The translations under genes were made by a program, and so were the position numbers. A stretch of 64,000 nucleotides of DNA from Azolla caroliniana (Eukaryota > Plantae > Polypodiophyta), in the NCBI GenBank assembly GCA_043228905.1, contig JBHGNT010000006.1, positions 18,476,001-18,540,000 of the forward strand, in the 5' to 3' direction. Each line of letters opens with the position of its first letter. Positions within the stretch are counted from its first letter, which is position 1. Of this stretch, positions 5,831-64,000 are shown piece by piece. The notes beneath the pieces are model-generated. The model ran no database searches. It saw only the letters and a list, made by a program, of their open reading frames with translations, and was not told the DNA's origin.

Positions 5831-5913
5831 CAGTTTTACCTGTTCTTCTTGGTTGGTTTTCCTTTCAAGCTATGTCGGTTGCAAAGGTTCTCAACCCTCG
5901 CGCTCTGATACCA

Positions 5914-33000: not shown

Positions 33001-33773
33001 TATCTCATCTTTTCCCTTCTCTTGAAAATTCCATTATCATCTTTGACATTGCCTCCATGAGATATTCCTCGTCCATCTTCATCCTCCCCTACCACTCTTC
33101 ACGTCAGGTTCACCAAAAGATGTCGCAAAAATGCTTGCGTGCATGTGCTATTTGAGCGGGACCATTGAGGTCTCAGACTAATGAGGTTGTTAGATGACCT
33201 TAAAAGACAATGATGTGGATGTTTGAGTCAAGGAAGACACTTTCACACTTGAAAAGATTAAGAAAATTGATACACTTGAGAGAAGATGTTTAATTAGAAA
33301 AAGATAAATGAGAGTATTATATTGATGATGGTGGTGATGGTGATATCACATATTGATCCCCCCCTTTACACAAGCATTAAGAGGGTTTTTATAGGTCTAT
33401 CCATGCTTCTAACATGCACAAAACCATGGGCTTGGACCCATGGTTTTTGGGCACACGGTTTTTCTTGTGGCATGCACAAAACCATGGGCTTGGAACATGG
33501 TTTTGTGCACACGGTTTTATACGGTTGTTTTCCTATGCCTTTTTAATATGAAAAGAAATAGATAACATTTAAAGTACTTGGTAGTAGCCCTAATAGTAAG
33601 ATAAATGTCTTCTATCTTGGAGGTGCAAGGTTCAAATCATGCTTGCACCCCTCTATATGCACTCGAATGCCACTAGACCCTAGGCTAATTTTCATATTTA
33701 TAATCGTTTGTGTAATGTGTGTGAAACCACACTATTTCACAATTTCTCCCATTGCACACGCAACATCACAACA
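30089..33773 (-). mobile_element. Non-autonomous gag-only LTR element S2 (decayed)
   Basis: LTRs 30089-30740 and 33121-33773. PBS TGGTGAACCTGACGTGAA (rc 33098-33115); PPT rc 30741-30752. Internal region is capsid-like gag plus a charged tail, with no PR/RT/RH/INT. Confidence 0.93.
30838..33076 (-). pseudogene. Capsid-plus-tail ORF of S2 (frameshifted)
   Basis: Fragments 32264-32716 and 31110-31757 align with the 60840-62771 protein (QAFL.FE.RF..L.E.E.RLVG.DKVL.F; LTEDW.KVERVC; MAMDES; GWKM). Confidence 0.85.
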
Positions 33774-37900: not shown

Positions 37901-39144
37901 AAATGCTCGAATACGAAGTTGAGCACGCCACCGATGATGATTCAGATGTGTCAGGTCCCTCACTAGACAATGAGTTTGGTGTATCTATCATAGACATATG
38001 CTACGGAGAAAGTTAGGGATTGAACCCAAGACCTCATGGTGTCTATTGGGCAACCCTACCAATTGAGCTACATATGCATCATCAACTTCATGTAGTGTAG
38101 ATTGAACATTGGAAGTTCCTAGCTTGCATGCATCCTCATTTTTAGCTTGCACATATTCTCATGCATTCTCTATTGCATGCATCCTCATGCATACTCTATT
38201 TCTAGCTGGCTTAGATAGCCCTACCTTATTGTATAAATACTCAGATGCACCTTGATTCTAATCAAGGTGAACAACACCAGTTACAGATACTATTAGTTTA
38301 GTTCGTGTTCTTTTCCTCTCTGTTGTTTTCTAGTCTTGTCTTTGCTCTGCTCTATTATACTTGTCCGTGATAATACCCATCATGTGGACACCTAGAGTAA
38401 AGAAGGCGCTCACATTGGCGAGCGAAAAACTTCAACGCTCTTCTAGAGAGCAGAATCATGTCACTCGGCTCAGCTACAACGAGTATATGGCCCATCATTA
38501 TGCCTTCGCGAAGAAGGTAGCGGCTGAACAAGAGCCCAAGAACTCTATAGAAGTGGCTCGTGATCCACGATGGGTGAAAGCAGTCGACCCAAGCCTTCAT
38601 CACAAGCCTGAGGGGGAGGAAGAAAGCCGCACAGAAACTGACATCGAAAGCCAGACGACACCGAAAGCTAAACCGGATGTCAGACGCCTCTCACTTGATC
38701 TTGCAGGGGGGTGTTGAGAGATCAAGCTCAACTAGAGTTAGTTAGTTAGTCAACCATGTAACTTCGTAGTTACTTAGATAGAAGCTAGTTAGAAGTGTGG
38801 ACTATAACTCTTTAAATAGGACCTTGTACTTAAGTGGGATATTCTAGATCCTCCACTCCTAAGTACATTTAATATAGGTCTTATACCTTTGTACCTATGT
38901 TCTGCTCACACATGTGCACCCTTGCACATGAGATCTATTTATACATCATTGTAGGTATTTTTGTATTTGATGATGCTAATTTAATATAGAGTTAATCATC
39001 CCCCATCTTGTGTTGTTCACATATGTAACTTCCTCTCTCTCTTCCTCTCACACACATACACACACATATCACATAATCTTCCACTTAGCTTAATCACATA
39101 ATTAGTTACTAACTAACCTATATTTAATTACCTAATTCTTAACA
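34915..39144 (+). mobile_element. Internally deleted Ty1/copia element C (gag-PR-INT; no RT/RH)
   Basis: 433-bp LTRs 34915-35347 and 38712-39144; TSD GACTC at 34910-34914 and 39145-39149; degenerate Met PBS 35348-35359; PPT ~38706-38711. A ~230-bp duplication lies in gag (35428 and 35658). Confidence 0.92.
37999..38372 (+). repeat. Probable solo LTR inserted in element C
   Basis: Interrupts copia coding sequence. Degenerate terminal inverted repeat TGCTACGGA/TCCGTGATA, TATA-like tataaata ~38232 and a CT-rich 3' part. No clean TSD. Confidence 0.6.
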
Positions 39145-45458: not shown

Positions 45459-46557
45459 ACAAGAACAAGAATGAACCAACGGTTACAAATAGGGATAGAA
45501 AGGTGCTTATATTGTCACCTTCTCTCTATATAACCACCACTTACTAAAGAGAGGTGGAGACTTAACTACATTGAATATGTGTCATAGAGCTTTAAGGTTC
45601 TATGACACACTAGTTACTATATTAGGAAGTGGGATGTTCACACTTGAGCATACTAGGGTGTGTTCCCACACTAGGGATGTTGATTGTCTATCGAAAGTTC
45701 ACATCGAAAGTGTGACCATCGACTGCTTCTTATTGCTCCATGATATGACTCTACTGCCGAGGGTGAAGCCGAATCATGATGTTGATTGTCTATCGGCTTT
45801 GTAGCCTATCCAATTGGCATAGGGGTAGCCTTCGAGTCGAATAAGCGGTGTGGTTGATTTGTAAAGGATGCAAAATCCTGTGGTTGATCTGTAAAGGATG
45901 CAAAATCCATCGTCCCACCTACATAGCGCAAAACTTGCGTAACACAGTCAGGATGGATGTTGCATGGTGTCTGCATAATATGGCTGAGGAGGCCGATTGG
46001 ATAGTTGAGGACGGGCCGAGTAATGGTGAGATAGATAAGGCTTTCGACTAGCCGACGATAGAAAGTCGATTCGCACTCTTTTGTTATTCCTTAGGTCCGG
46101 ACGATGGCCTAACACAGGGTGTCTACGGAAGACACTTCACCAAAGGGGTGTTTCGGCGAGATAACTTAAGACTCAACGATTAATCAGACTTTAATTGGTT
46201 ACTTAGCAATATGGCATTAGACTTGATACACGTGTAGGATAGAGCAATTAGCACAGAACGGTAATCAACACTTAAAGATAAAACAAGAAGCTCTATTAAT
46301 TATCCGTCAAAGTTTTGCATTGTAATCGGTGCCGAGTACAAAATGGTGCCAACCGGCACCTATTCGGAACTGGTCTGGATCCGGATCGGCATACCGATTC
46401 TGGTCTGTCCGTTCACGTCTCATAAACTACTTAATTATAATAGATTCTGAATATATAATCCCTTTCACATTCTGGTTTTTAACTCTTTTGCCGGTCGGGT
46501 AACACATGGCATGCCCGTGGGATAGTACCTTGTACGTCGAATCCCACTATTCGGCCC

Positions 46558-49430
46558 TTAGCCTTCGTCCAAGATATCCAGAATACTCTGCTCCAGGGTG
46601 TCCAATGGTTCTTCGGGAATCTGTTGTTGCTACTATTGTGGCTACTATTGTTGCTTTGGCTGTTGTTGTTGTGGTTGTGGCTGTTGTTGCTGCGGCTCCG
46701 GCTCCTCCGATTGTTGCTCCTTGGATGGCGTCTGTTCGGCTCCCAGTACCGGCGGTTGTGGCGGTGATTCCTCCGTCAGCTGCTTTGCCGGATTTGACTC
46801 CGGTTGACTTGCCCCAGCCTTGTCCCCATTGGGTCCTTGCCCCGGTGATGGCTCCTCATCGCTAAGGTTGATGGTCGCCGCCTGCCTTGCTTCTTCTTGC
46901 CGTAGCCTAGTCCGCTCATAGCTTTGAAACTGGATTTGAGCATCCAGTCGATCATCGTCCAGCTGTGCTACCAGTTGCCGAACCACTGTGAGTGTTCCTC
47001 CACCAGAGTTACAAAGTCTTCTGCTAACTCATCTCTTATGGCGGTGAAGTCCTCCTTTGTTAGCATGTAGCAGTCGTCGGCATCCTTCTACCGGTTTTCC
47101 GCGTCTGCCCTTAGCAACTAGAGCTTGGCTGTGTGCTTTGCCCATTTGTCCCACCATTGCACGGAGCTTTTGTCAATCAAGCGTTTTGTCTTGTTCCTCC
47201 ATGCCTGGACAATGAACTGGATCCGCTCAAGTCCCATCTTCGATTTGTCCTCCGCGGCTTGCCGTTCTTCCTTCAATTGCTTGATCAGCTTCACCGTGTC
47301 CGCCTCCTGCTCCCGGTAACGTGACAATTGGTTTTGGTAGGTGTTTTGAAACCTCTGCAATACCATTGTCGCTCTTTCCTTTTCTTCATAATGCTGCTTA
47401 TGGAGCTCCAAACGTTCCTGCGTGGCTTCCTCCAATAGCGTTGTTCTTTCAACCCGTTCTTTAGCTAGCGTTGTCTCGGCTCGATGAACTTCCTGCCAGA
47501 GCTCTGCCATCTTCTCTTGTTGCTTCTTATGCTCCGTATCCAGGTGCTTATAGTCCCGGTGTAGGTGCTCAAAATCATCGGTCTTCTACTTCAGCTTCTA
47601 GTTGAGTTGCCGGCGAGCGCGGTCTTCCCGATCTTTCTGTTGACAGAGTTCTTCTTTAAGTCTTTCAATCTTCCTTTCCGCTATCCATCGCAGCTTATCC
47701 TTTTATTGCAGCACTTTCTCTTTCTCCTCCTTAAGTCAGTCATATGCATGATGTCCTTTCCGCAGATTCTCTTCTGCCCGGCGGAGGTTCTCAACAATCT
47801 TTCTTTGTTCTTCTTCTGCCGCTTTCTTCAAGTCCCTTTCTCAGGTGCGTAATGCTTCTTGTGCGGCCAATTCATCTTTCAATTCGGCAAGCTCTTTCGC
47901 TTGCGCTGCCACTGTCTCCAGGACTGGTTCCGTCTCCAGGGTCTTACTACTGTGTATAGGTGCTGGTGTGTCTTTATTCTGTACATCTACCGAAGTCACC
48001 AATGCTTGGATCTGTGGTCCGGTTAAGGCCATTTTGGCCAATTCCTCTATGGCCAGGTCCAAGTCTTGTTCTAGGCTCCAGATTCTCGACCGGGCCGTCT
48101 CTAGTTCTCCGGTTGTGACTAGCAACCGGTCCATCTGCGCTTTCTCTTCCGCCTCTATGTAGTGCACCACTCCGGCAATCTGTTCTCCAATCCACCGGAG
48201 CCAATGGCTACCGGTGCCCTATTGTTGCGTCTGCACGGAGAGTTGGCTGTTGGTTCTGCTAGCCAATGGTCAGTCTTGTCTGGTTGCGTCGAGCTGCAAC
48301 TCTGTCTCTAGTTGGTGACCACTTTGCCGTTTTGGTTCCGGTTGCGCCTCCGTTGGCCGCTCCGCCTCTGATTGCTCTTGACCTGTCGGTGAGGGAGGCA
48401 ACTGTACTATTGGCGCTTGAATTTCGGGTCTTGCCGTATCCTAACCCTCCGATATAGCTTGTTGTGTAGGGAGCTCTGTGACCGGTTCTGTCCGAACCGG
48501 TTCCGGTTCCACCCTTGGTGCGGGATGCTCAGTGCGGGGTAGAGGCGTTCCATCCTTCTTTGGGTCCGAACGCTCCCGGCTTGTTCTGCCGTGCTTGCCT
48601 TTTGGCGCCGCTGGAGGTGTTCTAATGGTTCCTCCTCCACTTCCTCCTCCTGAGTCCCGATGTTGATTTTTGCTACCACGGGGTCCGTCTCTTGTTGAAC
48701 CGGTTGGTGAAATATGATCTTGACTGGCCGTGCCGGTGTCTCCTCCAGCGCTCTTTTGCCGCTTCCTATTGGCGCGCTCTTTTGCCGCCTTGTCCGTGTC
48801 GACCGCCTTCCCTTTGGGTGCCTTAGAGATCAACAGCTGCTGCCGTTTCGAAGCCATTTTCGGGGTGCCTTCGGTTGTTCTCCCCCGCTTCGTGGTCTTG
48901 ACGGGCTCAATAGGTGGCGCCAATAGGGTGAGCCATTGCGCCACTGCAGTCCATATTTTCCGACCCTCCTTGCCTCTTACAGAGTCGATGGCTGCATAGA
49001 GGCTGTCCGCAATCAGTACTAGCTAGTTCACCTTCATGCCTTCATATGTTGCTATGACTAAGTCGGCTTGGTTCTGAGGCATGCACGGGGGTCGAGGGTA
49101 TACATGTCCAAATTCATGGAGCACACGGGCAATCTCTCGAAATAATGTATCTTCGCCGCCCTGTGTCCTGTAGGCCTTGCTTGGCAGAGAGTATTCGCCA
49201 AAATATTTTCGGAGCTGCTCTGGGGTATGGTTGTCGATAGTGAAGATGCCCCCCTCCGGAAGGCCAATCAAAGCATGGATGGACTCCTCCGTGATCAGTT
49301 TTGTGTCGTTTACTTTACTATCTTCTCCGCCTCCCGGTGTGGTGGCGCCTCCATGATCGTGAGGAAACCTTCTAACCCGTGTTGCCTTAGCCACTTCTTG
49401 GCTACTTCAGAGAGTGCTTAGCAGTCCATG
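46558..49430 (-). pseudogene. Extra ORF downstream of integrase (plant-transposon-like N-terminal domain, long coiled coil, Q/P/E-rich tail)
   Basis: Collinear same-strand ORF fragments 49023-49394, 48441-48944, 47841-48170, 47118-47510 and 46645-46986; E/K/Q/L-rich heptad-like sequence. Confidence 0.7.
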
Positions 49431-49814
49431 GCTTCTTTGAGGTTCGTGAGCGCTGGTGAGGGATGTGTTTGAGGAGGCTCTGTGTGCGTGGGCTCGCGTC
49501 TGATGATCTTCAATCACCTGTGTGCGGTTGTGCTCCTCTGTTTGTGAAATGTGAAGACCTCCATGCGATGGGAGTTTTCTTGCTACATGTTGGCGCCTTT
49601 TTTTCTTCCCTGCGTGTGTGCACGTCGTGTACTAGACTACTATGACGTGCCATGTGGTGGCGGTTTAATACCCTATTAATAGCCCACCACGTACCTTTTC
49701 AATGTGCATGTTCACTCCTTGTTCTTGCATGTGTCCATTCACACATTGCCCTTGCATGATTTACTTTGATTTTATTTTTTGTTTTCAATCCTAAACTGTT
49801 TGGTTAATTCGCAT

Positions 49815-52800
49815 CTAGTCCCATCGGACCCCTATTCGAATTGTGGGATGATCCACAAACGCTTTCCTTCGCCACTGCTCTAGTTCTAGGTGCATGATGC
49901 TGGCTAGCCGGTGTTCTTCCAATTTGCACAACGCAGCTAACCGGATCACTTCCGATTCCTTCTCATTTAGGCGTTCTTGAATCTGTATTCGTAAACTCAG
50001 TACCTCGAACTCAACCGGCATCACTGCCTCCAATCCAAATGCTAGGTGAAACGGTGTTGTGCGGATACTTGTCTTATATGCCGTTCGATAGGCCCAGAGT
50101 GCACTGTGTAGCTTTGTATCCCAATCCGTCCAGTTCTCATTGACAATTTTTCGAAGGATGTTCTGTAGTGTTTTATTTGTTGACTCGGCTAATCCGTTGG
50201 CTTGCGGATAATAGGGAGTGCTCCGTTTGTGCACCACCGCATAGAATGTCGTCAAAATTTCCACTACTTGCCCTAAGAAGTGCCCACCTTGGTCACTTAT
50301 TAGCTCTATCGGACATCCATACCGGCACCAGATGTATTCATATAAAAATTTTGCCGTGGATGCCGCGGTGTTGTCGCGTAGTGCTTTGGCTTCCACCCAT
50401 TTTGTGCAATAATCCGTAGCGACAATCATGTACCGGTTGCCGGTTCTCATTGCTGGTGGTTTGAATGGACCGACAAAATCCAACCCCCATTTCTGAAATG
50501 GTTCTAACGGTAGCATGGGTTGGTGAGGCATCCTGGCTTGTTCGGTTGGTTGGCCCATTCACTAACATAGGTCGCATTCTTTAGCGTATCGAATTGCATC
50601 CTTCAATGTTGTTGGCCACCATAGTCCACTTTGCCATATTTTCCTTGCCATAGCGTCTCCGGCATAATGTCCTCCAACCACTCCGCAGTGTGCTTCGCTC
50701 AATATTATGTCCTTTTTGTTGCTGCGCACTGCACGCCGCCATATGCCATCTGCGCCTTTGTGGTACATGTGTCCTATAATAGACAGAAGTGACGGCTTTG
50801 AACAACTAAGCATTTCCTCTCGTCTTTGTTCATCTCCTCTAGAGGTAAGCCGGTGCTCAGAAATTGGTGCATGTTGGTGAGCCACTTGTCTTCCTTTGCG
50901 ACCGTACCATCCGTTGCCATTTCTGCTGTGACTCTAAATAGCTCTGCATTTGGGAACTTGTCTGAGACGCCGTCACCGGTTTCGCCGGAATCTAACCGGC
51001 TCAAATAGTTTGCTACCACATGTTGTATGCCGGGTCGGTGGAATATCTTGAACTCAAATTCTTGTAATAGTAACGTCCACCGGGTCAGCTTACCGGTGAG
51101 TGATGCTTTGGACACCAAATAGAGGAGCGCCGAATGATCTATGTCAAAGGAAAATTTCCTTCCCAACAGATAGTGTCTAAACTTGGTGACACTGTAGATC
51201 ATGCCCAAGGCCTCTCTTTCCGTTGTGGAATAATTACATTCTGCTTGGGACAGCTTCCAACTGGCATAATACACTGGCCTGTACCACTTCGGTTCTGTAA
51301 GTTGCATAAGCGCGCTCCCGACTGAGATGTCGGACGCGTCAACGAACACATGGAACTCTTTAGACCAATCTGGAGGTTGCACCACCGACGCTTGTGACAA
51401 TAGTACTTTTAGTGCCCGGTAAGCCTTGTCTTCTGTGTTCGTCCATTGGAATGGTGTCCGATGTACCGCGGCATGCAATGGTGTAGCTAAGTCTGCCAGA
51501 TACCGAAGCATTCGGCTATGCCACCGAATTTGTCCTAAGAACCAGCTTAATGCCTTTGCCATGGTTGGTGCCGGTGCCTCTAAAATATCTTTGACCTTGT
51601 CTGGATCCACTACAATACCGTCCTTGCTCACGATGTGGCCAAGTAACGCTCCGTTAGCCACTCCGAACACGCATTTTGCCGGGTTCGGGCTTAGCCGGTA
51701 AACCCTACATTTCTCCAGACATAGTCGGAGGTGCTGAAGGTGATCCCCTTCCCGGCTATAAACAACAAAGTCGTCCAAGAACACCTGCATGAATGCCGGA
51801 ATGAATTCTCCGAAAATCTCCATGATGATCCGCTGGAAGGTTGCCGGCGCTGTTTTCAGTCTGAACATCATAACTATGACAACAAAGACTCCCCATTCGG
51901 TGACAAAAGCGGTTTTCTCTTGGTCGTCGGGGTGCATCCGGATCTGATTATAGCCGCTGAAACCGTCTAGAAAACTGTACAACTCATGACCGGCGACCGC
52001 ATCCAGGACTCCATCCGTGAATGGAAGTAGGAAGACGTCCATTGCCATAGCCGCATTCAATTTCCGGTAGTTGACGCAAACTCTTATCTTACCGTTCTTT
52101 TTAGGTACTATGACTATCGGACTGAGCCATGTGGCTTTCTTTACCGGTCGGATGAAGCCAACCCTTAGCAACTTGTCGATTTCTTCTTTGACTTTTACTG
52201 CGTAATTTGGGTTCATCCGGTAACGCCGTTGCGCTACCGATTTGGCGTCTTTACTCAGATGTATATGGTGTTCATACAACTAAGGATCGAGTTCCTGCAT
52301 GTCCTCATAGGACCAAGCGAACACATCGCGAAATTTTTTTAGGAGTGTGATCATTGCCGTTTTGTTCTCCGAGGTCATTTCCTTGGCGATGTGAACCGGT
52401 CTTGCCTCCTCTGTGGTACCTATGTTTACCTGTTCTAGTTGGGATGCTTTTACGCGCTGCGACATTGCCATTTCTCTTTCCAGTGCCTCCTGTGCTTGCC
52501 GTAACTCCCGGATCGCTTCTTTATCTGGTTCCTCGTCGGTCCCGTTCGGTTGCAGTATGTACGGTGATACTACTTCGGCTACATCAATTTCGAACAAAGG
52601 TATGATCTTCGGATTTTCCTGTAAGTATTGATCAACCTCTTCGTCCACCAATCCTTCCAGCATGTTGACACATTCCACATATAGCGGCGTCAATTCCTTG
52701 CTGGTACCCGACCGTGGTTGAGTCGGTACTCGCACTTTCGCTTTTCCACGCCGGAACGTAATTATATTCTTTCTCCAGTTTTGCTTGATGTGTGTTGTTT

Positions 52801-52910
52801 TTAACCAAGGGCGTCCCAACAATAGTGGGTAAGCTCCTTGAGCCTATAGCTGGAGAACTACTGCCGAAATGCGAAATGTGTGACCCCCGATGGTCACTTC
52901 CAAATCACGT
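49815..52910 (-). pseudogene. PR-RT-RH-INT of the large gypsy host
   Basis: ORFs 52280-52822, 50774-52279, 50562-50885 and 49815-50558 carry gypsy pol motifs; the integrase C-terminus is missing. Confidence 0.92.
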
Positions 52911-53629
52911 TGTCGGGATATTACGCAAGTGCGTATAGAAACGATGCGGGACCGCGGGGGTCTTGAACCGAAGAGCAAGCGAGGGTGGAGAAAGAGAGAG
53001 GCCCGGTTACGCAGGACCGGGGATACACAGGGACACGACCCTTCAACACAGAGAACGCGAATAGACGCCGACACAGGTAGACGCAAACAAATGAATATAT
53101 ATCTATATATACGAGCAAGTGTCTGATCAAGAAGCTACAACCCGCGATGGGCACAGGATGGTTACAACCGAACAGGCCGGCGAACAGATGCCTATGCCTG
53201 TTCGCTGCGTCGCACAAAAGGGAGCAGGTCGGAGGTGCTGCCGGAAGCACTCGGGCGTCCCTCGAAACAGCGCGAGCCTCCTTGAAGATCTGCACAGCAA
53301 AAGCTATCGAGAAAAAGGGAAGGAGAACAGAGAGAGAAGCGTCCCCCGAATCGGTCCGACAGCACTTCGTCCTCCTCCCTTTTATCCGTCAAGAAGGAGC
53401 CGTTCGGCATTAAATTCCTACCTACCGTATCTAACCACTTCGATCCTCCTAGGTACCTAATTCGCCTCTATGTACAACTTGGCGCGCACGTGCGTGAAGA
53501 GCCGGTTCCCACGCCTTGGTGCCCCAATTCCACCCTTGGACGGTTTTCTTCACGACATCCTCCCCCACCTAACCGCGCATCCACCGGCATGCGCCAAATT
53601 AAGTTGGGACGGAGAAAACCGGCCCGCCT

Positions 53630-56600
53630 TCACTCTTCGCCCATCGGTCCTTCCTCGGTCTCGGATCGGTCGTCGCTGCTGTCTAGGAGAACCGGGTCTG
53701 GCTCGTCGTCGTGTCGCTTCTTGAAGGCTTTGATCCTCTTTCCAGCCACGGGTATCGCCATTCTCGTGCGGTCGAGTTCCGCCAGGTGATACGTCCCGTT
53801 GTCGTTGGTGCTTTGTACTGCGTACGGCCCAAACCATCTCCGTGCGAACTTCCGTGTAGCCCAGTGCTGATTGTCAAGGCTGCTGTCGTAGACGAGCACC
53901 CAGTCACCTTCCTCGATCTTCTTCGGTCGGAGCCGGTGCGTTCGGTCGAACCTGGCTTTATTCTTTGTCCTCGCCACCCGGAGTTTCTCCGTAGCCAGCT
54001 CCACGTCCTCCGGTCTCCGCTCGAGTTGTCGTATACGCGCGGCCAACAACTCCTCCCGACTCATCTCGTCCCTCCAGTCGACCACTGCCCATGAGGAGAT
54101 CGTCCGTTCCATCGGCATGATCGGCTTCTGGCCGAACATGAGCTCCGTCGGCATGTACCCGGTTACCGAACTGTGCGTAGTCCGGTCTGCCCACAAAGCG
54201 TAAGGTAGCAGCCGCGGCCAGTTACCGACTTGGCCTCCGCATGCCCGAACCAGCGCCTTAACGATCGGCCAATGTCCGCGCTCCACCTTTCCATTCGCCT
54301 CCGGATTGTACGCAGTGGTGAGCGAGAGCTTGACTCCCAGCCGGTCGAACAGCTCCGCGGCTTCTTCGGCGTCCAACTCCCCTCGGTCAGCCACGATCTT
54401 CCCGACGCACCCGTACCGGCATATCACGTCCTCGATTAGGAATCGACATACGGCCGCGGTCGTTTTGTTCTGAAGGGCTCGGCCTTCCACCTGGTTCGTC
54501 AGATCCTCCCGTGCTAGGACCAGATACCGCATCTGTCCTACCCCCATTGGCATCGTCACCAGATCTACCATCCATTTGAAGTGGATGGTCGGAGGGTACG
54601 TAGGGTGAAGCTCGTCCCGGTGTCGGACTACGGAGTGCATCTGACAATTTTCGCAAGTCGCCACGAACCGACGCACGTCTCGGTACAATCCCGGCCACCA
54701 GTACTTCCCCTTCAGTTTCTCGAACGTGGCCCACGTTCCACGGTGTCCAGCCCAAGGGCTGTCGTGGTAGGCCGCCAGCAGCTCCTCCTGTTCTTCCTTC
54801 ATCGCCACCACCCGGAGTGGGTCGCCGCTCCTCTTCTTCGGGTGTTTCCATAGATAGCCATCCCGGAGAAAGAACCGGTACGCTTTCTTCCGGATCCGGT
54901 TGGCCTCGTCTTTCGTCCATGACGCATCCGGCGCCATTGTCCTCAAGAACCCGCCGATCCGCAGCCACTCCCCGTCGTACTTGCTCGCGTCGAAGTCGTT
55001 AAGCGCCGGAGTGCTCGTCCCGTCTGTTGTTACGTATGCTGCCTCGAAGAAGTCCACGCCGACCTCTTCGTCCTCCGAAACCATGCCGCCCTCGTCATCG
55101 AACCTCGCCCTCGAAAGCATGTCGGCCATGGCGTTGTCTTTCCCGGAAATGTGTCGTATTTCCGGGTCCAGGGACTTGATGTACGCTATCCACCTGAGCA
55201 TCGCCAGGTCCGGCGTCGCGCATCCGGAAACCATGCCGAGAATTGGCAGGCAATCCGTCTCGATAATCACTTCTGTCCCGATCAGATAGTCTTTGTCGGC
55301 TTTTACCGCCGAAACGATACCCCAGAGTTCGCGTTTAACCTGGGCGTATCCTCGCTGCCGCTCACTGAGGACTTTCGCGCCGAATCGGATCGGAAACCGA
55401 TTGCCGTCCTCGTCTTGTTGGTGGACGACCCACCCGATTCCGGTCGGACTCGTGTCAACCGTTATGTATACTGGGGTGCCCTTCTTGTAGACGGCCTTCC
55501 GGAGCGCCGGTGCTGCCGAAAGAGCCTCCTTCAGCTTCCGGACCGACTCCGTGTGCTCGTCAAGCCATTCGAACCTTCACCCTTTCTTCAGCAACCCGTA
55601 CAGCGGCTCCGCGACGTGTGCGTAATGCGGGATCCATATGTGGTAAAACGCGCATGCTCCCAAGAATCTTCGTACTTCCGTGACCGAGCTGCAGTCGGGC
55701 TTCATCGCGGAGATGGCTTCTATCTTTGCCGGAGACGGTTTCCGGCCATATGGCCCACATAAGTGTCCGACCACCATGATTTCTGACTGCCCGAAGGCTG
55801 ATTTCTCCCCCGAGAAGGTGAGCCTCGCATCCTCTAGCCTTTGCAGCACCTTCTCGCAGTCGTCGATGTGCGTCGCCACGAATCGCCGGCATCCGTCCGG
55901 CCCGATCGTCTCGTCCTTCTCTGCTACCGGGCATCCCTTGATCGGGATGTCGTCCAGAAACGGCATGGTGATGTCCGGGATGCAGTCCCTCAGAACCTTG
56001 TTCATCGCATTCACCATGTGGGCCACCGAGTTGGTCCCTCCTTGCGGCAGCGTACACATCCGCACTAGGCCGAGGGGAGTTCGCATCGTCGTAATGTCTA
56101 TGCTCTCCACGGCTAGCTGGAACTGGTCGTACCCTGAGTATAGATCACCGACCGAGTAAATCGACCTTCCGGCGAAGGCCTCCGCGAACTCGTCTATGGT
56201 CGGTCCGATCCCTGCGTTCCGAATGGTCACCCTATTGACCGGTTGCAGGTCCTGAATGAAGCGCAATGATCCGTTTTTCTTTGGTACGGTAAACCATCGG
56301 TTTGAATACGGGGCGCTCGACGGCTCGAGAATGCCCATATCAACTTTCTGCTTCAACAGCTCCATCAACTTCGGGATGTGAGCTCTCGGAACCGGAATTG
56401 GCTTGAGATTCCACGGTACATGCGGTACCGTGAATATCACCATCGGCTCTACGATCGTCGGGTCTACGCACCCGATTTCCTCCGGTGAGAATGCGAAGGC
56501 TTTCCCGTGCCTTCCGAGCATTCTCCGAAACCGGTCTTCCTCCGCCGGTAGTAGGAACCCGCCCCCACCGATTTTGAGCTCCCGGAGTGTCTCGTTGGTG

Positions 56601-57112
56601 AAGGTGTGTCCTATGCAGGCCGGATCTCGTAAGCTGGGGTCCGATGCAACCCCTTTGATTCGCGACTCGCTGCCCTCCGGTAAGGGTACCGCGACTGGCC
56701 TTACCTTCCGGTCCACAGTCTTGTACTTGGTGCTTACTCGGGCCGTCCGGTCCGACTCGAGCCCCCGACCAAAGTCCGCGATGGCTTCGTACATCTCTTC
56801 GGAACATACCGGTATCGTCCGGTCTTCGTTAAGGTCCTCTTCGACTACCTTCCCCAGCATTCCCAAGGTGTCGTCGAAGGAGACCGCCTCCACGGCTCCG
56901 TTGATTTCCTCGTCAGGGCCGAGAACTCCGCACGCTCGAAGTCTCCCCTCCGTCTTTGTCTTCTCTCGGCCGGCGATGCCGACTATCGTACATGCTCCGC
57001 TGTCGGAGAAGCAAAATTTCCTACCTATTGTACACGGTCTTATCGTACAGATGTGGGGTTTTCCCGGAGCATCCGGACTGTCGCGGCCCCACGCCTTGGC
57101 AGTCCTCTCTAA
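53630..57112 (-). pseudogene. pol (RT-RH-INT) of element H, in the -1 frame relative to gag-PR, with one in-frame TGA
   Basis: Open from 57112 to the TGA at 55577-55579, then continues in the same frame through RH (ITVDTSPTGIG, KREL, ETDC, ADMLSR) and INT (H..GH..C..C, MVDLV, VADRG, ANGKVERG, WFGPY). Confidence 0.92.
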
Positions 57113-57118
57113 AAATCC
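57053..57118 (-). promoter_or_regulatory. Putative -1 ribosomal frameshift signal
   Basis: G GAT TTT heptamer directly before the gag-PR stop, 6-nt spacer, stems GGACTG/CAGTCC and GTGGGG/CCCCAC; the -1 frame is the pol frame. Confidence 0.8.
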
Positions 57119-59235
57119 TCTCGGTTTTCGGAACCGAGGGAGTCGCGGTTACGTTCGTGGTTCGGCCGTACCGTCAGAAACTGGACCGAATGGCGCCCGT
57201 CCTGGCTTTTGACCCTTGCATAGGCCGAACCGTTATTCAGCACCTTGGTCTCCATTCGCGCCGCCGTGATGTACGGCTCTCCCAATATTACCGGATGCGA
57301 GGACGTCTCCTGTACGAAGAAGTGCTGGTCAATCTCGACGTCGCCGATCTTGACCTGCACGTTCGGGCAGGCCCCGTGTAGTTCCTCGGTGGCGCGCGTC
57401 GCCGCCCGTATCTTCCACCCGTGCTTGGTGTTGATCGGCCATTTGCCCTTCTTGTAGAAGTCCATGGACATTAGGTTGATCTCCGAACCGTGGTCCACCA
57501 AAGCTACCACCGGTTCCTGGACATCTCCGATCTTCACCGGGGTTTCCGTGGTCGCTCGGGCCCAGTGTGGCCTCGAATAGTGGCTCTCCGCCCACTCATC
57601 TTCCAGCGACATGTCGTCTAGGTGCGTCGTCCGCACCTCTACCGGTCTTTCCGGTTCTACCTCCGTTGACAGCCTCTTCCGCTTCACCAAGTCCACGATG
57701 GAGTCGTGGAACTCCTTCCTGGCGATTCCTAGCACTTCCCGTAATGACAACTCCACCTTGCTGTCGAGGATCCGTTCTTCTAGGACCTTCCGCAGGTCCG
57801 TGGTCCTCTCTATTTCCGTCCCCAGTCGGTATCCGCCCTTCCTGGGGTTATCTTGCGCACTGGACCCGCCGGCCTCGTTCCGTCGTTGCCCGAACCGGGT
57901 CTCGTATCGTTGTAAGGGCCCGGTCGTTCCGGTTTTCCCCACCCGCTTCTCTTCTACCAGAGCCTCGTAGTTCTGGCAGGCGGCTTCCACGAAGCCCGTC
58001 TTTTCCTCGACCGGGTCGCTCCACCCGGTTATCTCCCGGACCCGTTTCTCCGCGCGGTCCGCTTCGTCCCCTTTCAGCCGCGTGCCGGCGAGGCCTTCCA
58101 GCATCGCCGACCAGAATCCGGCTTTGCTTTCCTTTCGGGCCTCGCTGCCCCCGACCCGAATGCCGGCCGACGCCGAGTAGTGGACGATTTCCGCATGTCG
58201 GGCCGCCGCCTCTTCCATCAGTCTCTTCATCCCTCCTTGCCCGTCGTTTCGGTTTAGGGCCCTTCTGGTGTCGCTGGCGTGCACCCGGCCTTCCCACAGG
58301 TACACCACCCGGTTCTTCAGCGCCTCCGCGAAATCGCCGCAGTCCTTCCGAATGTGGCCGACCTCGTCGCACCACATGCATCTGTTTCCCGCTGCCGGCT
58401 GTCGGTCGCGAGCCGGCTCGCCGCCTTCCCTGCGGGCTTGTGCAATTTGGAGGTCCTTTATCGCCCTCGTCAATTCCTCCAGCGCCGCTCCTCCGGTTGA
58501 GCCTCTGATCACGCCGGTCGAAGCTGAACCGGTTTCCAGCCACTCCCGGGTCTCTCCCTTTCGCACCGGCTGCGCCGGTTCAAGCTTCCTTGCTGCGACC
58601 GAGCCCGACCCGGTCGCCCCGTTATCCGCCCATTCTCGCCGTTTGTCGAAACGGCCGCAGGCTCTCTTAACCGCCGCCCAGTCGGTCGTCAGCCCGTCTT
58701 CGGGCTCCAGCAGGGCGCCCACGTGATCCCGATCCCGCTCGTCCACCGACTTGACGAACAGTAGGACCCGGCTTGTATCCAGGATCGTTCGGTCAAGCGT
58801 CGAAAGGCACGCAAAGTTTTCCTCAAACTCCCGGAGGAGTGCCGACGCGTTTCTTCCCTTCCTGGGGGACTCCACCCATTCCATGAAGCTTCGTTTCGAA
58901 AGCCGGAGCGCGTCGTCCAGCCCGTATTTCTCTAGGAGCCGACCTTCGAACTCCTCCCAGGTACGGCTCTCCGCCCGCACCTCGAGCACCTCCGCATGGA
59001 TGCTTGGCATCGCCACTCGGGGAAATCCGGCAAGACGCGTTTCTTCCGGAATGTCCCGCATCAGCATCTCTGCACCGTAGGACGCCAAGTACTTCGTGGC
59101 ATCCTTTCCGCTGAATCGGCCGATTGTACCGACGACCGCCTCAATGGCTCTGTCGAGGGCGCCGGAGCCCTCGCGTGCGTTTACTAACCGGTCAACGGCC
59201 GAAGCCATGGCCTCTGCAAGATCCGATCCCCTCAT
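57109..59235 (-). CDS. Gag-protease ORF of element H (708 aa from MRGSDL)
   Basis: Capsid-like region, zinc knuckle CMWCDEVGHIRKDC, aspartic protease LVDHGSEIN..ILGEPY; ends EDF-TAG. Confidence 0.93.
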   Translation of the reverse strand: MRGSDLAEAMASAVDRLVNAREGSGALDRAIEAVVGTIGRFSGKDATKYLASYGAEMLMRDIPEETRLAGFPRVAMPSIHAEVLEVRAESRTWEEFEGRLLEKYGLDDALRLSKRSFMEWVESPRKGRNASALLREFEENFACLSTLDRTILDTSRVLLFVKSVDERDRDHVGALLEPEDGLTTDWAAVKRACGRFDKRREWADNGATGSGSVAARKLEPAQPVRKGETREWLETGSASTGVIRGSTGGAALEELTRAIKDLQIAQARREGGEPARDRQPAAGNRCMWCDEVGHIRKDCGDFAEALKNRVVYLWEGRVHASDTRRALNRNDGQGGMKRLMEEAAARHAEIVHYSASAGIRVGGSEARKESKAGFWSAMLEGLAGTRLKGDEADRAEKRVREITGWSDPVEEKTGFVEAACQNYEALVEEKRVGKTGTTGPLQRYETRFGQRRNEAGGSSAQDNPRKGGYRLGTEIERTTDLRKVLEERILDSKVELSLREVLGIARKEFHDSIVDLVKRKRLSTEVEPERPVEVRTTHLDDMSLEDEWAESHYSRPHWARATTETPVKIGDVQEPVVALVDHGSEINLMSMDFYKKGKWPINTKHGWKIRAATRATEELHGACPNVQVKIGDVEIDQHFFVQETSSHPVILGEPYITAARMETKVLNNGSAYARVKSQDGRHSVQFLTVRPNHERNRDSLGSENREDF

Positions 59236-60073
59236 TTCCTGCTCTTCTGCCGCCTCTTTCACGTCGGGTTCACCAAGATGTCGGGATATTACGCAAGTGC
59301 GTATAGAAACGAGGCGGGACCGCGGGGGTCTTGAACCGAAGAGCAAGCGAGGGTGGAGAAAGAGAGAGGCCCGGTTACGCAGGACCGGGGATACACAGGG
59401 ACACGGCCCTTCAACACAGAGAACGCGAATAGACGCCGACACAGGTAGACGCAAACAAATGAATATATATCTATATATACGAGCAAGTGTCTGATCAAGA
59501 AGCTACAACCCGCGATGGGCACAGGATGGTTACAACCGAACAGGCCGGCGAACAGATGCCGATGCCTGTTCGCTACGTCGCACAAAAGGGAGCAGGTCGG
59601 AGGTGCTGCCGGAAGCACTCGGGCGTCCCTCGAAACAACGCGAGCCTCCTTGAAGATCTGCACAGCAAAAGCTATCGAGAAAAAGGGAAGGAGAACAGAG
59701 AGAGAAGCGTCCCCCGAATCGGTCCGACAGCACTTCGTCCTCCTCCCTTTTATCCGTCAAGAAGGAGCCGTTCGGCATTAAATTCCTACCTACCATATCT
59801 AACCACTTCGATCCTCCTAGGTACCTAATTCGCCTCTATGTACAACTTGGCGCGCACGTGCGTGAAGAGCCGGTTCCCACGCCTTGGTGCCCCAATTCCA
59901 CCCTTGGACGGTTTTCTTCACGACAACGTATTAATCTGGTCGACTGTACTGAGTGGCAGAGCAAGCATTGGGAACGCATGGTGCATTCCAGCACCGAATG
60001 TCCGTCATTCAGGCATGTTGTACATTGAATTGCTTGTTGGAAGCGGAGGTCCTCATCTGTCGGTAGTGCACGC

Positions 60074-63000
60074 TGTCGTAGTGTATTTTGTACACTACGT
60101 GAAAAACGTATATAGTATTAGATTCAATAAAAAATGAAGAAATAGAAGAAAATAGCAAAATAAATGGAACATGCATAGGGCAAGATTTGAACCTTGCACC
60201 TCCATGTTAATAATGTAATGTCTTACCATTACACTAGCATTTCATTAGTGTTAAAGCATAGATGTCCCACATAGAAAGGTAAATTCACGCTAGGATAAAC
60301 ATTAGAAAAACGCATAACAAAAGAAAAAGCTACACATACACATCTAGCGTGCATGATAAAAAACGCACAAGTTAGAAAAAAGCATGATCACTTTAGATAA
60401 AGCATATAGTCTATCTATAGGAAAAGCATGGGGTCTATAGTTAGAGAAAAAGCATGGATTACTAAGACTTCCTCATCACTACATAAGGATGGGAAGCACA
60501 ATGTAATTGTGTGTGAAAAATATTTGGAAACTGGATATGTTTCTAAAAAACACCAATTAATAAACTATACTCGTGGGATTCACGAGAATTCTATATCATT
60601 CTCTTTCAACCGAAGTTTATATTCTTATATTCATATTGATTAATCTAATACAATACACTCGTGGGATTCACGAGTTTGCTATAACTCTTTCTTACAACAT
60701 ATTTATATTCTTATTAGCCTTAAAACTCTCCTCTTCCTAGTCCAAAACCCCAGCGGTTCCCACCCGACTCACGCAACGATCCGGAGCCGAAAGGCACGAC
60801 ACAGTTGGTGAACCCGACGTCAAGGCGGGTGGCAAGGAGATGGAGAATCAACAAGAGGCGATGAGCATAACGATGATGATGATGTTCGAGCGGATGCTAC
60901 AAGAACAACGAGTGATGTCGGAGATCACGGGGGCAGTAAAGCGGCTCGTACAACGAAACGGACAATTCAACGGAAACGATGTGTCACGCTATCTACGTGA
61001 CTACAAGGCGGAGATGATACGATGTGGGATACCGGAAGGATTGCAAGTGACATCCTTCAATCGGGTGGCCACGGATGAGCTACAAGAGAGAATCCACAAG
61101 ATACGGCAACAAAACTCGACATGGGGGTCATTTGAAGAAGCTTTACGGGAGGCATATGACTATGAGAGATGGACGGGACGAGATCGACGAGAATTCGACG
61201 AATGGGTGGCGTCGGAGAAGACTCACCGAAGTGCAACGCAAGCGTTCCTAGAGTTCGAGCATCGTTTTGCTCGACTCTCGGAGCGGGAACGAAGATTGGT
61301 GGGAGGAGATAAAGTCTTAATGTTCGTAAGATCGATCGATCGGAAAGAAAGGATGGACATTGGGATCGAACTCGAAGATGATGACGGTGCGAACGGCCTT
61401 ACCGAGGATTGGGCTAAAGTCGAAAGGGTATGCCGAAGACATGATGAAAGGAAGCTGAGAATCTCGTCAACAACGACATGGCCCATGAAGGATGGTCGAT
61501 TGAGGAAAAATGATGAAGCCAATATGAAGGCCGAAATACAACATGATGGTACCACGGGAGAAAGAGTGGAACAAGACACCCACTCGTCTTGTGAAAGAAC
61601 GATGGCGAAGGATAAGGCCGATAATTCAAGTGTAGAAGGAAATTTCGGGATACAAGTGCCCGAGACATCGGGTCAAAAAGGGGTAAGCATAATAGATGTT
61701 TGCATAATTGATGCAGATAAAGAGTGTGAAGCGGATGTGATTAAGGAGGTAGCCACAAAAGACGAAATCGAATCGGAGGTGGCTATGGACGAATCAATGG
61801 CGGATTGCCATATCGAGACTTCCCCACCACTGATTCCAGAGACTCCGGCGGTTGCGATCGAAAGGCAACGTGAGACCGAAGAGACGGAAGGTGGCGGAGA
61901 GAAAACGAATGTCGAAGCCGACGAATATGATGAAGAAATAGCCGAGAAGAATGCTAAGGGTGAAACTACGAAAGAAGGTAATACCGAGGATTCATGCCAA
62001 CAATATCTAGAGACTTCGGCGGTTGTGTCCGAGAACCAACGTGAGACCGGAGAGACGGGAGATGGCGGCGAGGAAGGTAAAGTCGGAAGTCGGTTCGGAT
62101 GGAAAATGATTCATCCGAAATTCCAATCTAAAAGAAAGTGCGACAATGCGGAGGTCGGGTCTACGACGGGAGAAGCGCGTAATACAGAGCACGCTCTACG
62201 GCGAATAAAGAAATGCGTGTTATGGCGAATAAAGAAGCACGCGCTACGGCGAGAAAAGAAGCATGCATTACAACCACACGAGGACCGAACAACGAGCACA
62301 TATCGGAGGACCTACGTAGAGAACAACGGAAAGAAGTGCCGAAAGTCGAACCGGACAAGGCAGGTGAAAACGAAGAAAAGAAAGCAAATCCGGACGAAAA
62401 GAAAAGAAAAGAAACCGACCCGAAAGAGCACTGAATCGGTAAAAACTGATCAACCGAGTCCGGATCGACCGAATACAAATCGGAAAGGAAGCCGAACTAA
62501 ACGAAAGACGATCCGACGAGACCGAATTGGAAGTAAGCTAATCCGACTAAACCGAAAATCCGAAAAGAAGTCGAGATTGATGAAGAAAAGAAAGAGGGCA
62601 AGAAAAGATACTACCGCGGATGACAAGGACCAAGCGGGCCATGCAAAAAGCGAACGAAGACTATGGTGGATCGGATGGCGACAATGGTTCGGGTGGAAAG
62701 AATGGGTCTACTCAAAATGGAGAGACAAAGTTGACATAGCGGGACAAACGGAGGATGAAGGAGGAGACTAACAAACACCAACAACTTCGGCACATACCGG
62801 AGGATGTGCGGGTTTGGAGGGGGTGAGTGTCGTAGTGTATTTTGTACACTACGTGAAAAACGTATATAGTATTAGATTCAATAAAAAATGAAGAAATAGA
62901 AGAAAATAGCAAAATAAATGGAACATGCATAGGGCAAGATTCGAACCTTGCACCTCCATGTTAATAATGTAATGTCTTACCATTACACTAGCATTTCATT

Positions 63001-63555
63001 AGTGTTAAAGCATAGATGTCCCACATAGAAAGGTAAATTCACGCTAGGATAAACATTAGAAAAACGCATAACAAAAGAAAAAGCTACACATACACATCTA
63101 GCGTGCATGATAAAAAACGCACAAGTTAGAAAAAAGCATGATCACTTTAGATAAAGCATATAGTCTATCTATAGGAAAAGCATGGGGTCTATAGTTAGAG
63201 AAAAAGCATGGATTACTAAGACTTCCTCATCACTACATAAGGATGGGAAGCACAATGTAATTGTGTGTGAAAAATATTTGGAAACTGGATATGTTTCTAA
63301 AAAACACCAATTAATAAACTATACTCGTGGGATTCACGAGAATTCTATATCATTCCCTTTCAACCGAAGTTTATATTCTTATATTCATATTGATTAATCT
63401 AATACAATACACTCGTGGGATTCACGAGTTTGCTATAACTCTTTCTTACAACATATTTATATTCTTATTAGCCTTAAAACTCTCCTCTTCCTAGTCCAAA
63501 ACCCCAGCGGTTCCCACCCGACTCACGCAACGATCCGGAGCCGAAAGGCACGACA
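60074..63555 (+). mobile_element. Young non-autonomous gag-only LTR element S1
   Basis: 728-bp LTRs 60074-60801 and 62828-63555 (I see 2 differences); 4-bp TSD ACGC; PBS TGGTGAACCCGACGT 60806-60820; PPT 62816-62827; single ORF, no pol. Confidence 0.97.
60840..62771 (+). CDS. Capsid-like Gag fused to an acidic, then basic, then Trp-rich tail (643 aa, intact)
   Basis: The first ~200 aa align by eye with element H gag (G.F.G.D...YL..Y.AEM; TW..FE..L.E.Y; F.EWV.S; VL.FV.S.D; LT.DWA.V.R.C). No zinc knuckle or protease motif. Confidence 0.92.
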   Translation: MENQQEAMSITMMMMFERMLQEQRVMSEITGAVKRLVQRNGQFNGNDVSRYLRDYKAEMIRCGIPEGLQVTSFNRVATDELQERIHKIRQQNSTWGSFEEALREAYDYERWTGRDRREFDEWVASEKTHRSATQAFLEFEHRFARLSERERRLVGGDKVLMFVRSIDRKERMDIGIELEDDDGANGLTEDWAKVERVCRRHDERKLRISSTTTWPMKDGRLRKNDEANMKAEIQHDGTTGERVEQDTHSSCERTMAKDKADNSSVEGNFGIQVPETSGQKGVSIIDVCIIDADKECEADVIKEVATKDEIESEVAMDESMADCHIETSPPLIPETPAVAIERQRETEETEGGGEKTNVEADEYDEEIAEKNAKGETTKEGNTEDSCQQYLETSAVVSENQRETGETGDGGEEGKVGSRFGWKMIHPKFQSKRKCDNAEVGSTTGEARNTEHALRRIKKCVLWRIKKHALRREKKHALQPHEDRTTSTYRRTYVENNGKKCRKSNRTRQVKTKKRKQIRTKRKEKKPTRKSTESVKTDQPSPDRPNTNRKGSRTKRKTIRRDRIGSKLIRLNRKSEKKSRLMKKRKRARKDTTADDKDQAGHAKSERRLWWIGWRQWFGWKEWVYSKWRDKVDIAGQTEDEGGD

Positions 63556-64000
63556 ACGCTGAAGTGCGCCCATGGTTAGCCATGAACTTGATTTTTCCAT
63601 TTCCCGAACTCGGTCGATCACTTGATCTATGCTACTGGTGTGGAAATCAATGACGGTGCACACTGTTCGGAAGGGTTCCCGGAGTGTTGCTAAGAATATG
63701 GCCTTTGTTTCTTCCTCCGGTGGTGCCCGGCTGAGCTGATTGTGTATCTGCTGGAATCGCATGATAAACTGTTGAAGTTCTCCGTTGGTTCCTGCCGAAT
63801 AATGTAAAATAGGCCTACCATTTCCTGTTGTTCCATCTCCTTGTGAAAGAAATGCAAGAATTTGTTCTTTAATGCTTCAAACGTGGGGATGGTGCTGGGA
63901 TCTTGTGTTTGGTGCCATCTAGCGGCCGGTCCCTCCTGGGTCATGCCGAACTCTGCCATTTTTTAGCATTCCTCTTCGGCCGCATTTAAGCGTTGGGACA

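Follow-up and report, generated by a model that had tools for sequence, protein, structure and literature searches.

TR-GAG-type gag-only elements in a Phygy-like Ty3/gypsy clade from Azolla caroliniana DNA: a probable mosaic element and a selected capsid-tail cassette

A stretch of 64,000 nucleotides of Azolla caroliniana DNA (GenBank assembly GCA_043228905.1, contig JBHGNT010000006.1, positions 18,476,001 to 18,540,000; hereafter the window) holds a nest of long terminal repeat (LTR) retrotransposons, among them a pol-bearing Ty3/gypsy element, H, and two elements, S1 and S2, with a single gag-like open reading frame (ORF). The explanation that we favor, at a probability of roughly 0.7 for the whole, is that all three belong to one clade of Phygy-like bryophyte Ty3/gypsy elements, as the hallmarks of Phygy and the named relatives suggest, that S1 and S2 are its non-autonomous members of the TR-GAG type, and that S1 is a recombinant with an autonomous lineage, A1. 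S1 would thus be a mosaic, in which an S cassette (about 61130-62760) sits inside the LTR, primer binding site (PBS), leader, capsid N-lobe, hairpin and polypurine tract (PPT) of A1. The S cassette, that is the capsid C-lobe and a long tail, is an old lineage under purifying selection.

Comparison of the window with itself (self-blastn) gave five LTR pairs, three of which belong to H, S1 and S2 and have the same coordinates as in an earlier note on this DNA. H and S1 lie head to head with 148 bp between them, both inside an older, unrelated gypsy element on the minus strand. Their features are listed below (TSD, target site duplication; aa, amino acids).

60074-63555, plus strand: element S1, gag-only and non-autonomous, 3482 bp; TSD ACGC at 60070-60073 and 63556-63559
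60074-60801, plus strand: S1 5' LTR, 728 bp, GC content 34%; U5 motif at 60740-60767; homologous over its whole length to the LTR of contig L002 (61-77%)
62828-63555, plus strand: S1 3' LTR; 2 mismatches in 728 nt against the 5' LTR
60806-60823, plus strand: S1 PBS, TGGTGAACCCGACGTCAA
60840-62771, plus strand: S1 ORF, 643 aa, intact; capsid-like domain (aa 1-205) and S-specific tail (aa 206-643)
60840-61130, plus strand: predicted S1 capsid N-lobe, about aa 1-95; 72-78% aa identity to L002/L005, 29-39% to other S elements
61131-61454, plus strand: predicted S1 capsid C-lobe, about aa 96-205, of the S clade; 56-78% to L001/S2-type, 35-38% to L002/L005
61455-62768, plus strand: S tail in S1, acidic, then K/R-rich, then with the Trp-rich motif RRLWWIGWRQWFGWKEW (62655-62741); homologous in S2 and 24 further gag-only proteins
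62790-62827, plus strand: S1 pre-PPT hairpin (62790-62809) and PPT (62810-62827); 98% identity to L002 over 62780-62820
30089-33773, minus strand: element S2, gag-only, 3685 bp; LTRs 30089-30740 and 33121-33773, PBS 33098-33115, hairpin and PPT 30741-30777
52911-59925, minus strand: element H, a probable Phygy-like Ty3/gypsy element, 7015 bp; TSD ACGT at 52907-52910 and 59926-59929
59279-59925, minus strand: H 5' LTR, 647 bp, GC content 54%; U5 motif at 59309-59336
52911-53557, minus strand: H 3' LTR; 6 mismatches in 647 nt against the 5' LTR
59258-59275, minus strand: H PBS, TGGTGAACCCGACGTGAA; complement of the CCA-ended plant small RNA TTCACGTCGGGTTCACCA
57112-59235, minus strand: H ORF for gag, DUF4100 and protease (PR); bilobed capsid and CCHC knuckle; ends at the conserved GGAUUUUUAG
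53633-57148, minus strand: H pol, in the -1 frame, with reverse transcriptase (RT), RNase H and integrase (INT); one in-frame TGA at 55579-55577
53558-53594, minus strand: H pre-PPT hairpin (53575-53594) and PPT (53558-53574)

S1 is a recent insertion, since its LTRs differ at only two positions and both its TSD and its ORF are intact. S2 is an old, decayed and dead copy: it matches S1 over the whole ORF, in three blocks (49%, 44% and 51% identity) that are spread over three frames, and at least two frameshifts and three in-frame stops interrupt the ORF, all of the stops being in the capsid part. Its LTRs show 26 mismatches and one gap in 653 nt (95.9% identity). No Pfam match was found in the ORF of S1 or S2, and none for the tail or for the larger S proteins even at E up to 1. 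We rejected a chance ORF on the T-poor sense strand of S1, since its last 438 codons contain no stop where dinucleotide shuffles lead one to expect 21 and where the other two frames have 25-27. In H, Pfam found RVT_1, RT_RNaseH_2, Integrase_H2C2 and rve (pol was queried as its separate pieces), with DUF4100 and a weak Asp_protease match in the first ORF; no match to Chromo was found in the H ORFs. This copy has the full domain set, yet it is probably not autonomous as it stands, because of the in-frame TGA, which lies between RT and RNase H. Most of what the earlier note had said of the three elements was borne out: one ORF in S1 and S2 with no PR, RT, RNase H or INT, an intact frame and near-identical LTRs in a recently inserted S1, and LTR bodies that differ, the GC content of S2 being 38%. 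Its full gag-PR and pol for H holds for the domains and fails for the interrupted pol frame.

The note had also described the satellite capsid as homologous to H gag and much diverged, and indeed aa 8-205 of S1 align with aa 79-273 of H gag at 34% identity (E = 3e-34). An AlphaFold model of S1 aa 1-215, built with 36 homologues, is all-helical, with a predicted local distance difference test score (pLDDT) of 89. Its best Foldseek matches, at probabilities up to 0.98 and E-values of 0.07 or higher, were dArc1, Arc, dArc2, PNMA2, Copia, Ty1 CA-CTD, Ty3 and PEG10. Since the best structural matches are retroelement capsids, the label of capsid is supported by fold as well as by homology. A profile search with the capsid domain against PDB sequences gave nothing meaningful.

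An HMMER search with the S1 capsid domain against 1.84 billion representative proteins gave 398 matches, the best 150 of which were examined, and a word-based search with the whole S1 ORF gave 25; in all, 180 proteins were retrieved. The retrieved gag proteins split cleanly into two types. Those of the autonomous type carry CCHC, DUF4100 and PR, and align at about 50% to the rest of the H ORF. Those of the S type, 25 proteins of 374-893 aa from public assemblies, have a tail homologous to that of S1, most of them ending in WWIGW, and none has a CCHC zinc knuckle (CX2CX4HX4C; 0/25), of which the H and A1 gag proteins have one. The S tail, about 440 aa long and acidic/basic, takes the place of nucleocapsid (NC), PR and pol; aa 431-600 of S1 are 37% K+R. 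A tblastx comparison of the tail with H, L002 and L006 gave no similarity in any frame, which rules out a tail that is merely NC, PR or pol read in another frame. Against the rest of the window the same program found only S2, apart from two weak isolated matches.

The best-conserved block of the S proteins is their Trp-rich end, ERRIWWIGWRxWFGWKEWxxSKW, which holds two GW dipeptides and lies directly upstream of the hairpin and PPT. We saw it at 62655-62741 of the window and at the C-termini of P0002, P0158-P0162, P0164, P0165, P0169, P0170, P0176 and P0178-P0180.

Gag-only elements with the same PBS and hairpin also occur on contigs from other samples (L001, L003, L004 and L006), one of which, L004, is a 96% copy of S1. 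Three of the contigs (L001 1-5560, L003 1-9269 and L006 1-10615) read LTR-internal-LTR-internal, with two different internal regions and one LTR, and on L006 this arrangement links an autonomous element to a gag-only one. These tandems may be real arrays or assembly joins via shared LTRs.

Intact S ORFs of 566-719 aa persist at synonymous divergences (dS) of about 0.7-1.2. Overall, the ratio of nonsynonymous to synonymous differences (pN/pS) was 0.27-0.34 in the capsid and 0.37-0.76 in the tail, the tail values of distant pairs being soft, with binomial P of 0.014 or lower. These ratios are upper bounds, because copy-to-copy comparisons take in the neutral decay that follows insertion. The pairs compared were the following.

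S1 against L004, C-lobe plus tail: pN/pS 0.34, binomial P 0.004
L001a against L001b, capsid: pN/pS 0.34, binomial P 5e-7
L001a against L001b, tail: pN/pS 0.55, binomial P 8e-8
S1 against L001a, C-lobe: pN/pS 0.27, binomial P 9e-9
S1 against L001a, tail: pN/pS 0.57, binomial P 2e-6

Values of 0.27-0.57, with nonsynonymous changes significantly under-represented, agree with the selection that the earlier note had proposed for the satellite capsid. They also bear on the simplest way to account for a gag-only element, namely that S1 and S2 are plain internal-deletion derivatives of autonomous elements and that the long ORF is merely left over from them. In its favor, some pol-bearing elements do have LTR ends and an N-terminal gag of the S1 type, and the S2 ORF has decayed. 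However, the tail has no counterpart in the autonomous elements H, L002 and L006, it is homologous among 25 gag-only proteins that conserve the WWIGW end, the ORFs are still open at dS of about 1 with pN/pS significantly below 1, and no autonomous-type protein with an S-clade C-lobe was found among the best 150 of the 398 matches. We therefore regard plain deletion as very improbable. The note, too, had held that the S elements are not simple deletions, and that pol-bearing elements with S1-type LTRs and near-identical gag would make them so; elements with such LTRs do exist, but their gag is not near-identical, and their C-lobe and everything downstream are unrelated to S.

Those pol-bearing elements are the A1 lineage, found on four contigs from four ENA samples (L002, L005, L038 and L039), with gag-PR and pol. 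L002 (7350 bp) has a gag-PR ORF of 679 aa and a pol ORF of 1155 aa (RT, RNase H and INT), and its pol is 69-75% identical to H pol in nucleotide sequence. The 5' end of L002 matches that of S1 through the U5 region, PBS, leader and first 100 or so gag codons (80.6% over 413 nt), the U5 end, PBS and leader of S1 being 84-90% identical to those of L002 and L039. At the other end, the hairpin, PPT and LTR start of S1 and L002 are 85-98% identical, and L005 and L039 carry S1's hairpin/PPT and LTR start too. The capsid N-lobe of all four is 60-78% identical to that of S1, while the identity of H to S1 is 20-44% for the capsid and about 70% for the hairpin/PPT. The similarity changes sides within the S1 protein: aa 1-95 are 72-78% identical to the autonomous L002/L005 and 29-39% to the gag-only L001, but aa 96-205 are 35-38% identical to L002/L005 and 56-78% to L001. 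An assembly chimera is an unlikely source of the A1-type contigs, since elements of this kind recur on L005, L038 and L039, contigs built by two assemblers from three further samples.

In sliding windows, the breakpoints of S1 fall at about 61100-61160 on the 5' side and about 62740-62780 on the 3' side. The first corresponds to aa 95-102 or so, between model helices 79-91 and 95-124 and roughly between the capsid lobes. Trees of the two lobes are incongruent. For the C-lobe, a single clade unites 18 S rows, S1 and S2 among them, with full support in the Shimodaira-Hasegawa-like approximate likelihood ratio test (SH-aLRT 100) and a stem length of 0.91, and H is the nearest autonomous row to it (support 82). 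For the N-lobe, S1 and its kin group with the autonomous proteins P0172-P0174 (support 98), the S2/L001 clade stands elsewhere (support 99), and a single S clade was rejected by the approximately unbiased (AU) test (p = 0.0003). Since its ends and N-lobe match A1 while its C-lobe and tail match the S clade, S1 is best read as a mosaic. Thus, of the long-independent satellite lineage that the earlier note had envisaged, the C-lobe/tail cassette is indeed old, and S1 as a whole is a recombinant. The note's view of H as the closest partner of S1 did not survive the comparison with the N-lobe and ends of A1.

The exchange with autonomous elements would not be confined to one event. S1 and L004 are 100% identical downstream of 61160 and 78-97% identical upstream of it in sliding windows, and at synonymous sites they diverge by 0.25 in the N-lobe but by 0.03-0.05 in the other regions. 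In two further proteins, P0176 and P0179 (the latter on L006), an S tail is joined to a capsid that resembles the one of the autonomous L006 element. Both patterns point to repeated exchange between S and autonomous elements. As to its direction, the uptake of A1 ends by an older S element is the simplest course, because the retrieved autonomous proteins include none whose C-lobe is of the S clade or whose N-lobe is of the S2 type; for the S2/L001-type N-lobe, the 180 retrieved proteins gave no autonomous partner.

One may then ask which autonomous element serves S1. The neighboring H, or its family, could be the helper, with S1 and S2 as one satellite lineage that has been independent over its whole length for a long time. 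No other relative in the window carries pol, and H has the same termini and PBS, the same U5 motif and hairpin and the same ACGN target as S1 and S2; its place nearest to the S clade in the C-lobe tree, and gag-only elements on L003 with an H-like hairpin loop, PPT and LTR start, speak for this too. We nevertheless consider it improbable, since the LTR, leader, N-lobe and hairpin/PPT of S1 are 60-98% identical to A1 as against 20-70% to H, one S lineage is rejected for the N-lobe by both tree and AU test, and this copy of H has a stop in pol. Under the mosaic reading that we prefer, elements of the A1 type, rather than the neighboring H copy, are the most likely helper of S1, because the ends and N-lobe of S1 come from A1. 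Other S families may be served by H-like lineages, given that the PPT and LTR start of the L003 elements resemble those of H. In the clade at large, the borrowing of RT and INT in trans is plausible.

A more radical version of the mosaic reading, which we hold only tentatively, is that the lasting satellite unit is just the cassette of C-lobe and Trp-rich tail, or even the tail alone, and that recombination refits it repeatedly with the LTRs, PBS, leader, packaging region and N-lobe of whichever autonomous Phygy-type lineage is active. Such refitting would have taken place at least twice, once for S1-type elements with A1 and once for P0176 and P0179 with the autonomous lineage of L006.

The signals that a helper would have to recognize are shared by all three elements of the window, as the earlier note had stated. 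The termini are TGTCG..CGACA; the 18-nt PBS is TGGTGAACCCGACGTGAA in H and has one mismatch each in S1 and S2; the U5 motif GTYCAAGACCCCnGnGGTYCC is located 40-65 nt ahead of the end of the LTR. The 20-nt pre-PPT hairpin, GCGCAT-8 nt-ATGCGC in H and GCACAT-8 nt-ATGTGC in S1 and S2, differs by one compensatory pair and folds as a 6-bp stem in every element tested. The note had further placed a 4-bp TSD at ACGY after a C in all three. H (ACGT/ACGT) and S1 (ACGC/ACGC) do have such duplications, but S2 is flanked by TAGT/ACGT (sense), which is not intact, and the preceding base is C in S1 and T in H. L002 has gone into a copy of the window's copia element at ACGG, the empty site in the window reading CAA/ACGG/TAAAG, and a target motif ACGN is supported by H, S1 and L002.

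A block of about 50 nt in U3 (73-78% identity) is common to the otherwise dissimilar LTRs of several gag-only elements: S1 (60180-60231, LTR positions 107-158), S2 (LTR positions 132-183) and the 3' LTRs of L001 and L006. It may be a regulatory motif.

The complement of the PBS is identical to TTCACGTCGGGTTCACCA, the CCA-ended plant small RNA known as 'miR894', which occurs abundantly in land plants and, in Cryptomeria, maps to gypsy elements (PMC5846777). There is no tRNA gene in the window, and none of the 31 loci at which a scan of viral_contigs found the 15-mer is a tRNA gene. Because the PBS is its exact complement, the match suggests that 'miR894' is a tRNA 3' fragment corresponding to the PBS of this gypsy clade.

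The assignment of the clade leans on Phygy, a non-chromovirus Ty3/gypsy lineage in which the TSD is 4 bp in 100% of elements, with the motif NCGN, and the PBS is of tRNA-Trp type in 81% (REXdb; Neumann et al. 2019, PMC6317226 and its supplement file 5). Phygy elements have no additional domains, their internal region is filled by coding sequence, and they were defined from Physcomitrella only, with lengths of 7.7-10 kb (PMC6317226). H agrees in its domain order (GAG-PROT-RT-RH-INT, with no chromodomain or additional RNase H), and in the coding sequence that takes up most of its internal region, and its PBS may be of the tRNA-Trp type; the duplications ACGT in H, ACGC in S1 and ACGG in L002 are 4-bp and of the NCGN type. 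We count the probable -1 frameshift between gag-PR and pol as a further hallmark. Bryophytes are among the hosts of the named relatives of the gag and pol proteins (Physcomitrium patens, with the gag relative A9U5C3, Riccia sorocarpa and Riccia fluitans). However, H is shorter, at 7.0 kb, and its nearest named relatives are in Riccia liverworts, the pol relatives being Riccia proteins with up to 61% identity, a value reached by L002 pol. In the literature that we found, no gag-only derivatives of the Phygy lineage turned up.

TR-GAG elements are defined by LTR-retrotransposon ends and one ORF for GAG, and were described in angiosperms (Chaparro et al. 2015, PMC4350172). We assign S1 and S2 to them because they have just these properties. 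Both are below 4 kb (3482 and 3685 bp), with LTRs, PBS and PPT, a TSD that is intact in S1 and degraded in S2, and one gag-like ORF lacking PR, RT, RNase H and INT; the signs of recent activity and the presumed trans-mobilization are common to both systems as well. The type element TR-GAG1, in contrast, is copia-like and has a UBN2 gag domain with a zinc knuckle, while the S elements come from a gypsy clade and lack the knuckle, a trait of that type element and not part of the published definition (PMC4350172). The S elements differ further in their conserved, selected tail of about 440 aa and in the capsid-lobe swap that could be mapped to an autonomous partner.

Partner pairs are also known from rice (RIRE2 and Dasheng) and barley (BARE1 and BARE2), where Dasheng has no coding capacity and BARE2 has a defective gag and uses that of BARE1. 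As in these pairs, the non-autonomous S1 has LTR ends, PBS and PPT in common with an autonomous partner, and it would use the proteins of that partner and form chimeras with it by template switching. BARE2 represents the opposite division of labor, the S elements keeping and selecting their own capsid C-lobe and tail. In non-autonomous LTR elements generally, chimeras and copies in tandem are documented, as is template switching (PMC13570524).

The following mechanism would account for these observations. S1 and S2 would keep every cis-signal needed by the RT and integrase of the clade (LTR termini, PBS, U5 motif, hairpin and PPT), and their single predicted protein would consist of a bilobed capsid domain and a disordered, S-specific tail where NC, PR and pol would otherwise be. 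Autonomous relatives would supply PR, RT, RNase H and integrase in trans. After packaging, S RNA would be reverse-transcribed, with a tRNA-Trp and the PPT as primers, and the product would be integrated at ACGN sites; template switching between co-packaged S and A1 RNAs would generate mosaics. The basic part of the tail could substitute for NC, and the N-lobe could be matched to that of the partner for co-assembly.

The S protein might instead be dispensable for the mobility of S and act on the helper or the host, either as an interfering factor in the manner of Ty1 p22 and Drt2 or by engaging Argonaute (AGO) through its GW end against silencing. Ty1 p22 and the Drt2 CA-CTD restriction factor (structures 7nlg and 9rxy), gag/capsid fragments without pol, are among the fold matches of the S1 capsid, the S protein has neither NC nor PR, the most conserved block, ERRIWWIGWRxWFGWKEW, includes two GW dipeptides, and the N-lobe is repeatedly matched to a local autonomous partner, something that interference would need as much as co-assembly. 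GW motifs are linked with AGO. However, Ty1 p22 and Drt2, as truncated products or host genes, act to block the element from which they derive, whereas the S proteins are two-lobed, lie between LTRs and multiply with them; indeed the LTRs, TSDs and many copies show that the ORF moves with a mobile element and not as a host gene, and the basic segment could simply stand in for NC. We think this alternative quite unlikely, somewhat more so than H as helper.

Several points weigh against the TR-GAG-type, mosaic reading of S1 and should be set beside it. Trans-mobilization and packaging are things that we infer, and the S protein is a predicted one. The A1 partner was seen only in public metagenome assemblies and not in the window; short-read assemblies of repeats can be chimeric, and the tandems of L001, L003 and L006 may be joins. 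The direction of exchange is a matter of parsimony alone. At high divergence, the alignment of the low-complexity tail is uncertain, and the Foldseek E-values for the capsid are weak. Finally, the tRNA-Trp assignment is presumptive; it comes from a published small RNA, TTCACGTCGGGTTCACCA, that we take to be the 3' end of tRNA-Trp.

With regard to expression of pol, the first open frame of H is 59502-57112, with a probable start at 59235, and the pol frame (57148-53633) overlaps the gag-PR frame by 36 nt in the -1 register. All four autonomous elements examined (H, L002, L005 and L006) have GGAUUUUUAG at the gag-PR stop and pol open in the overlapping -1 frame. Sites of the form GGAUUUUUAG/A lie at 57109-57125 in the window and at about 2245-2256 in L002, 2918-2929 in L005 and 2644-2655 in L006. 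Such conservation of GGAUUUUUAG in H and three more autonomous relatives, each with pol in the -1 frame, makes a programmed -1 frameshift at the gag-PR stop codon likely. A literature search on DUF4100 found no paper.

The remainder of the window contains further repeats. The older Ty3/gypsy element into which H and S1 are inserted is of another lineage and occupies 46000-52910, 59926-60073 and 63556-64000 of the minus strand, with gag at 63556-64000, CCHC knuckles at 59926-60073, the protease end at 52280-52910, RT-RNase H at 50774-52279 and integrase at 49815-50558. A Ty1/copia element at 40020-45459 (minus strand) has an intact gag-pol ORF of 1376 aa and LTRs that are 95.7% identical with a 28-bp indel; the best match of its polyprotein, in a JGI metagenome, has 68% identity, and angiosperm matches reach about 55%. 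L002 holds an 89% copy of this copia element, in which the A1-type insertion lies at the site equivalent to about 44224. Another LTR pair (430 bp, 92% identical) bounds a 4.2-kb element at 34918-39144 in which only copia-type Pol_BBD and gag_pre-integrs fragments were found, with internal tandem repeats of 230-246 bp at 35428-35905; it is probably degraded or non-autonomous. Positions 1-25000 carry large diverged inverted and direct repeats (for example 1563-4933 against 24085-20687, 74%, and 4021-6157 against 6343-8531, 73%), which indicate older copies of further repeat families, and GC content swings there from 34% to 51%.

What appears new in these elements is their Phygy-like source clade, the replacement of NC by a selected tail and a lobe-level swap of the capsid with a specific autonomous lineage. 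A Phygy-type clade with a preference for ACGN targets would thereby be extended past Physcomitrella to liverwort relatives. Non-autonomous LTR elements are usually seen as decaying derivatives that retain cis-signals, whereas here a gag-only lineage keeps a selected protein module over deep divergence. The system bears on how a satellite is matched to its helper in packaging, capsid co-assembly and integrase ends, on whether a disordered basic tail can stand in for a nucleocapsid, and on how often helpers are switched. If the cassette is indeed the lasting unit, the tail would be a selected protein module of a new kind, confined to retrotransposon parasites, and it might replace NC, steer co-assembly with the helper capsid or engage silencing factors via its GW motifs.

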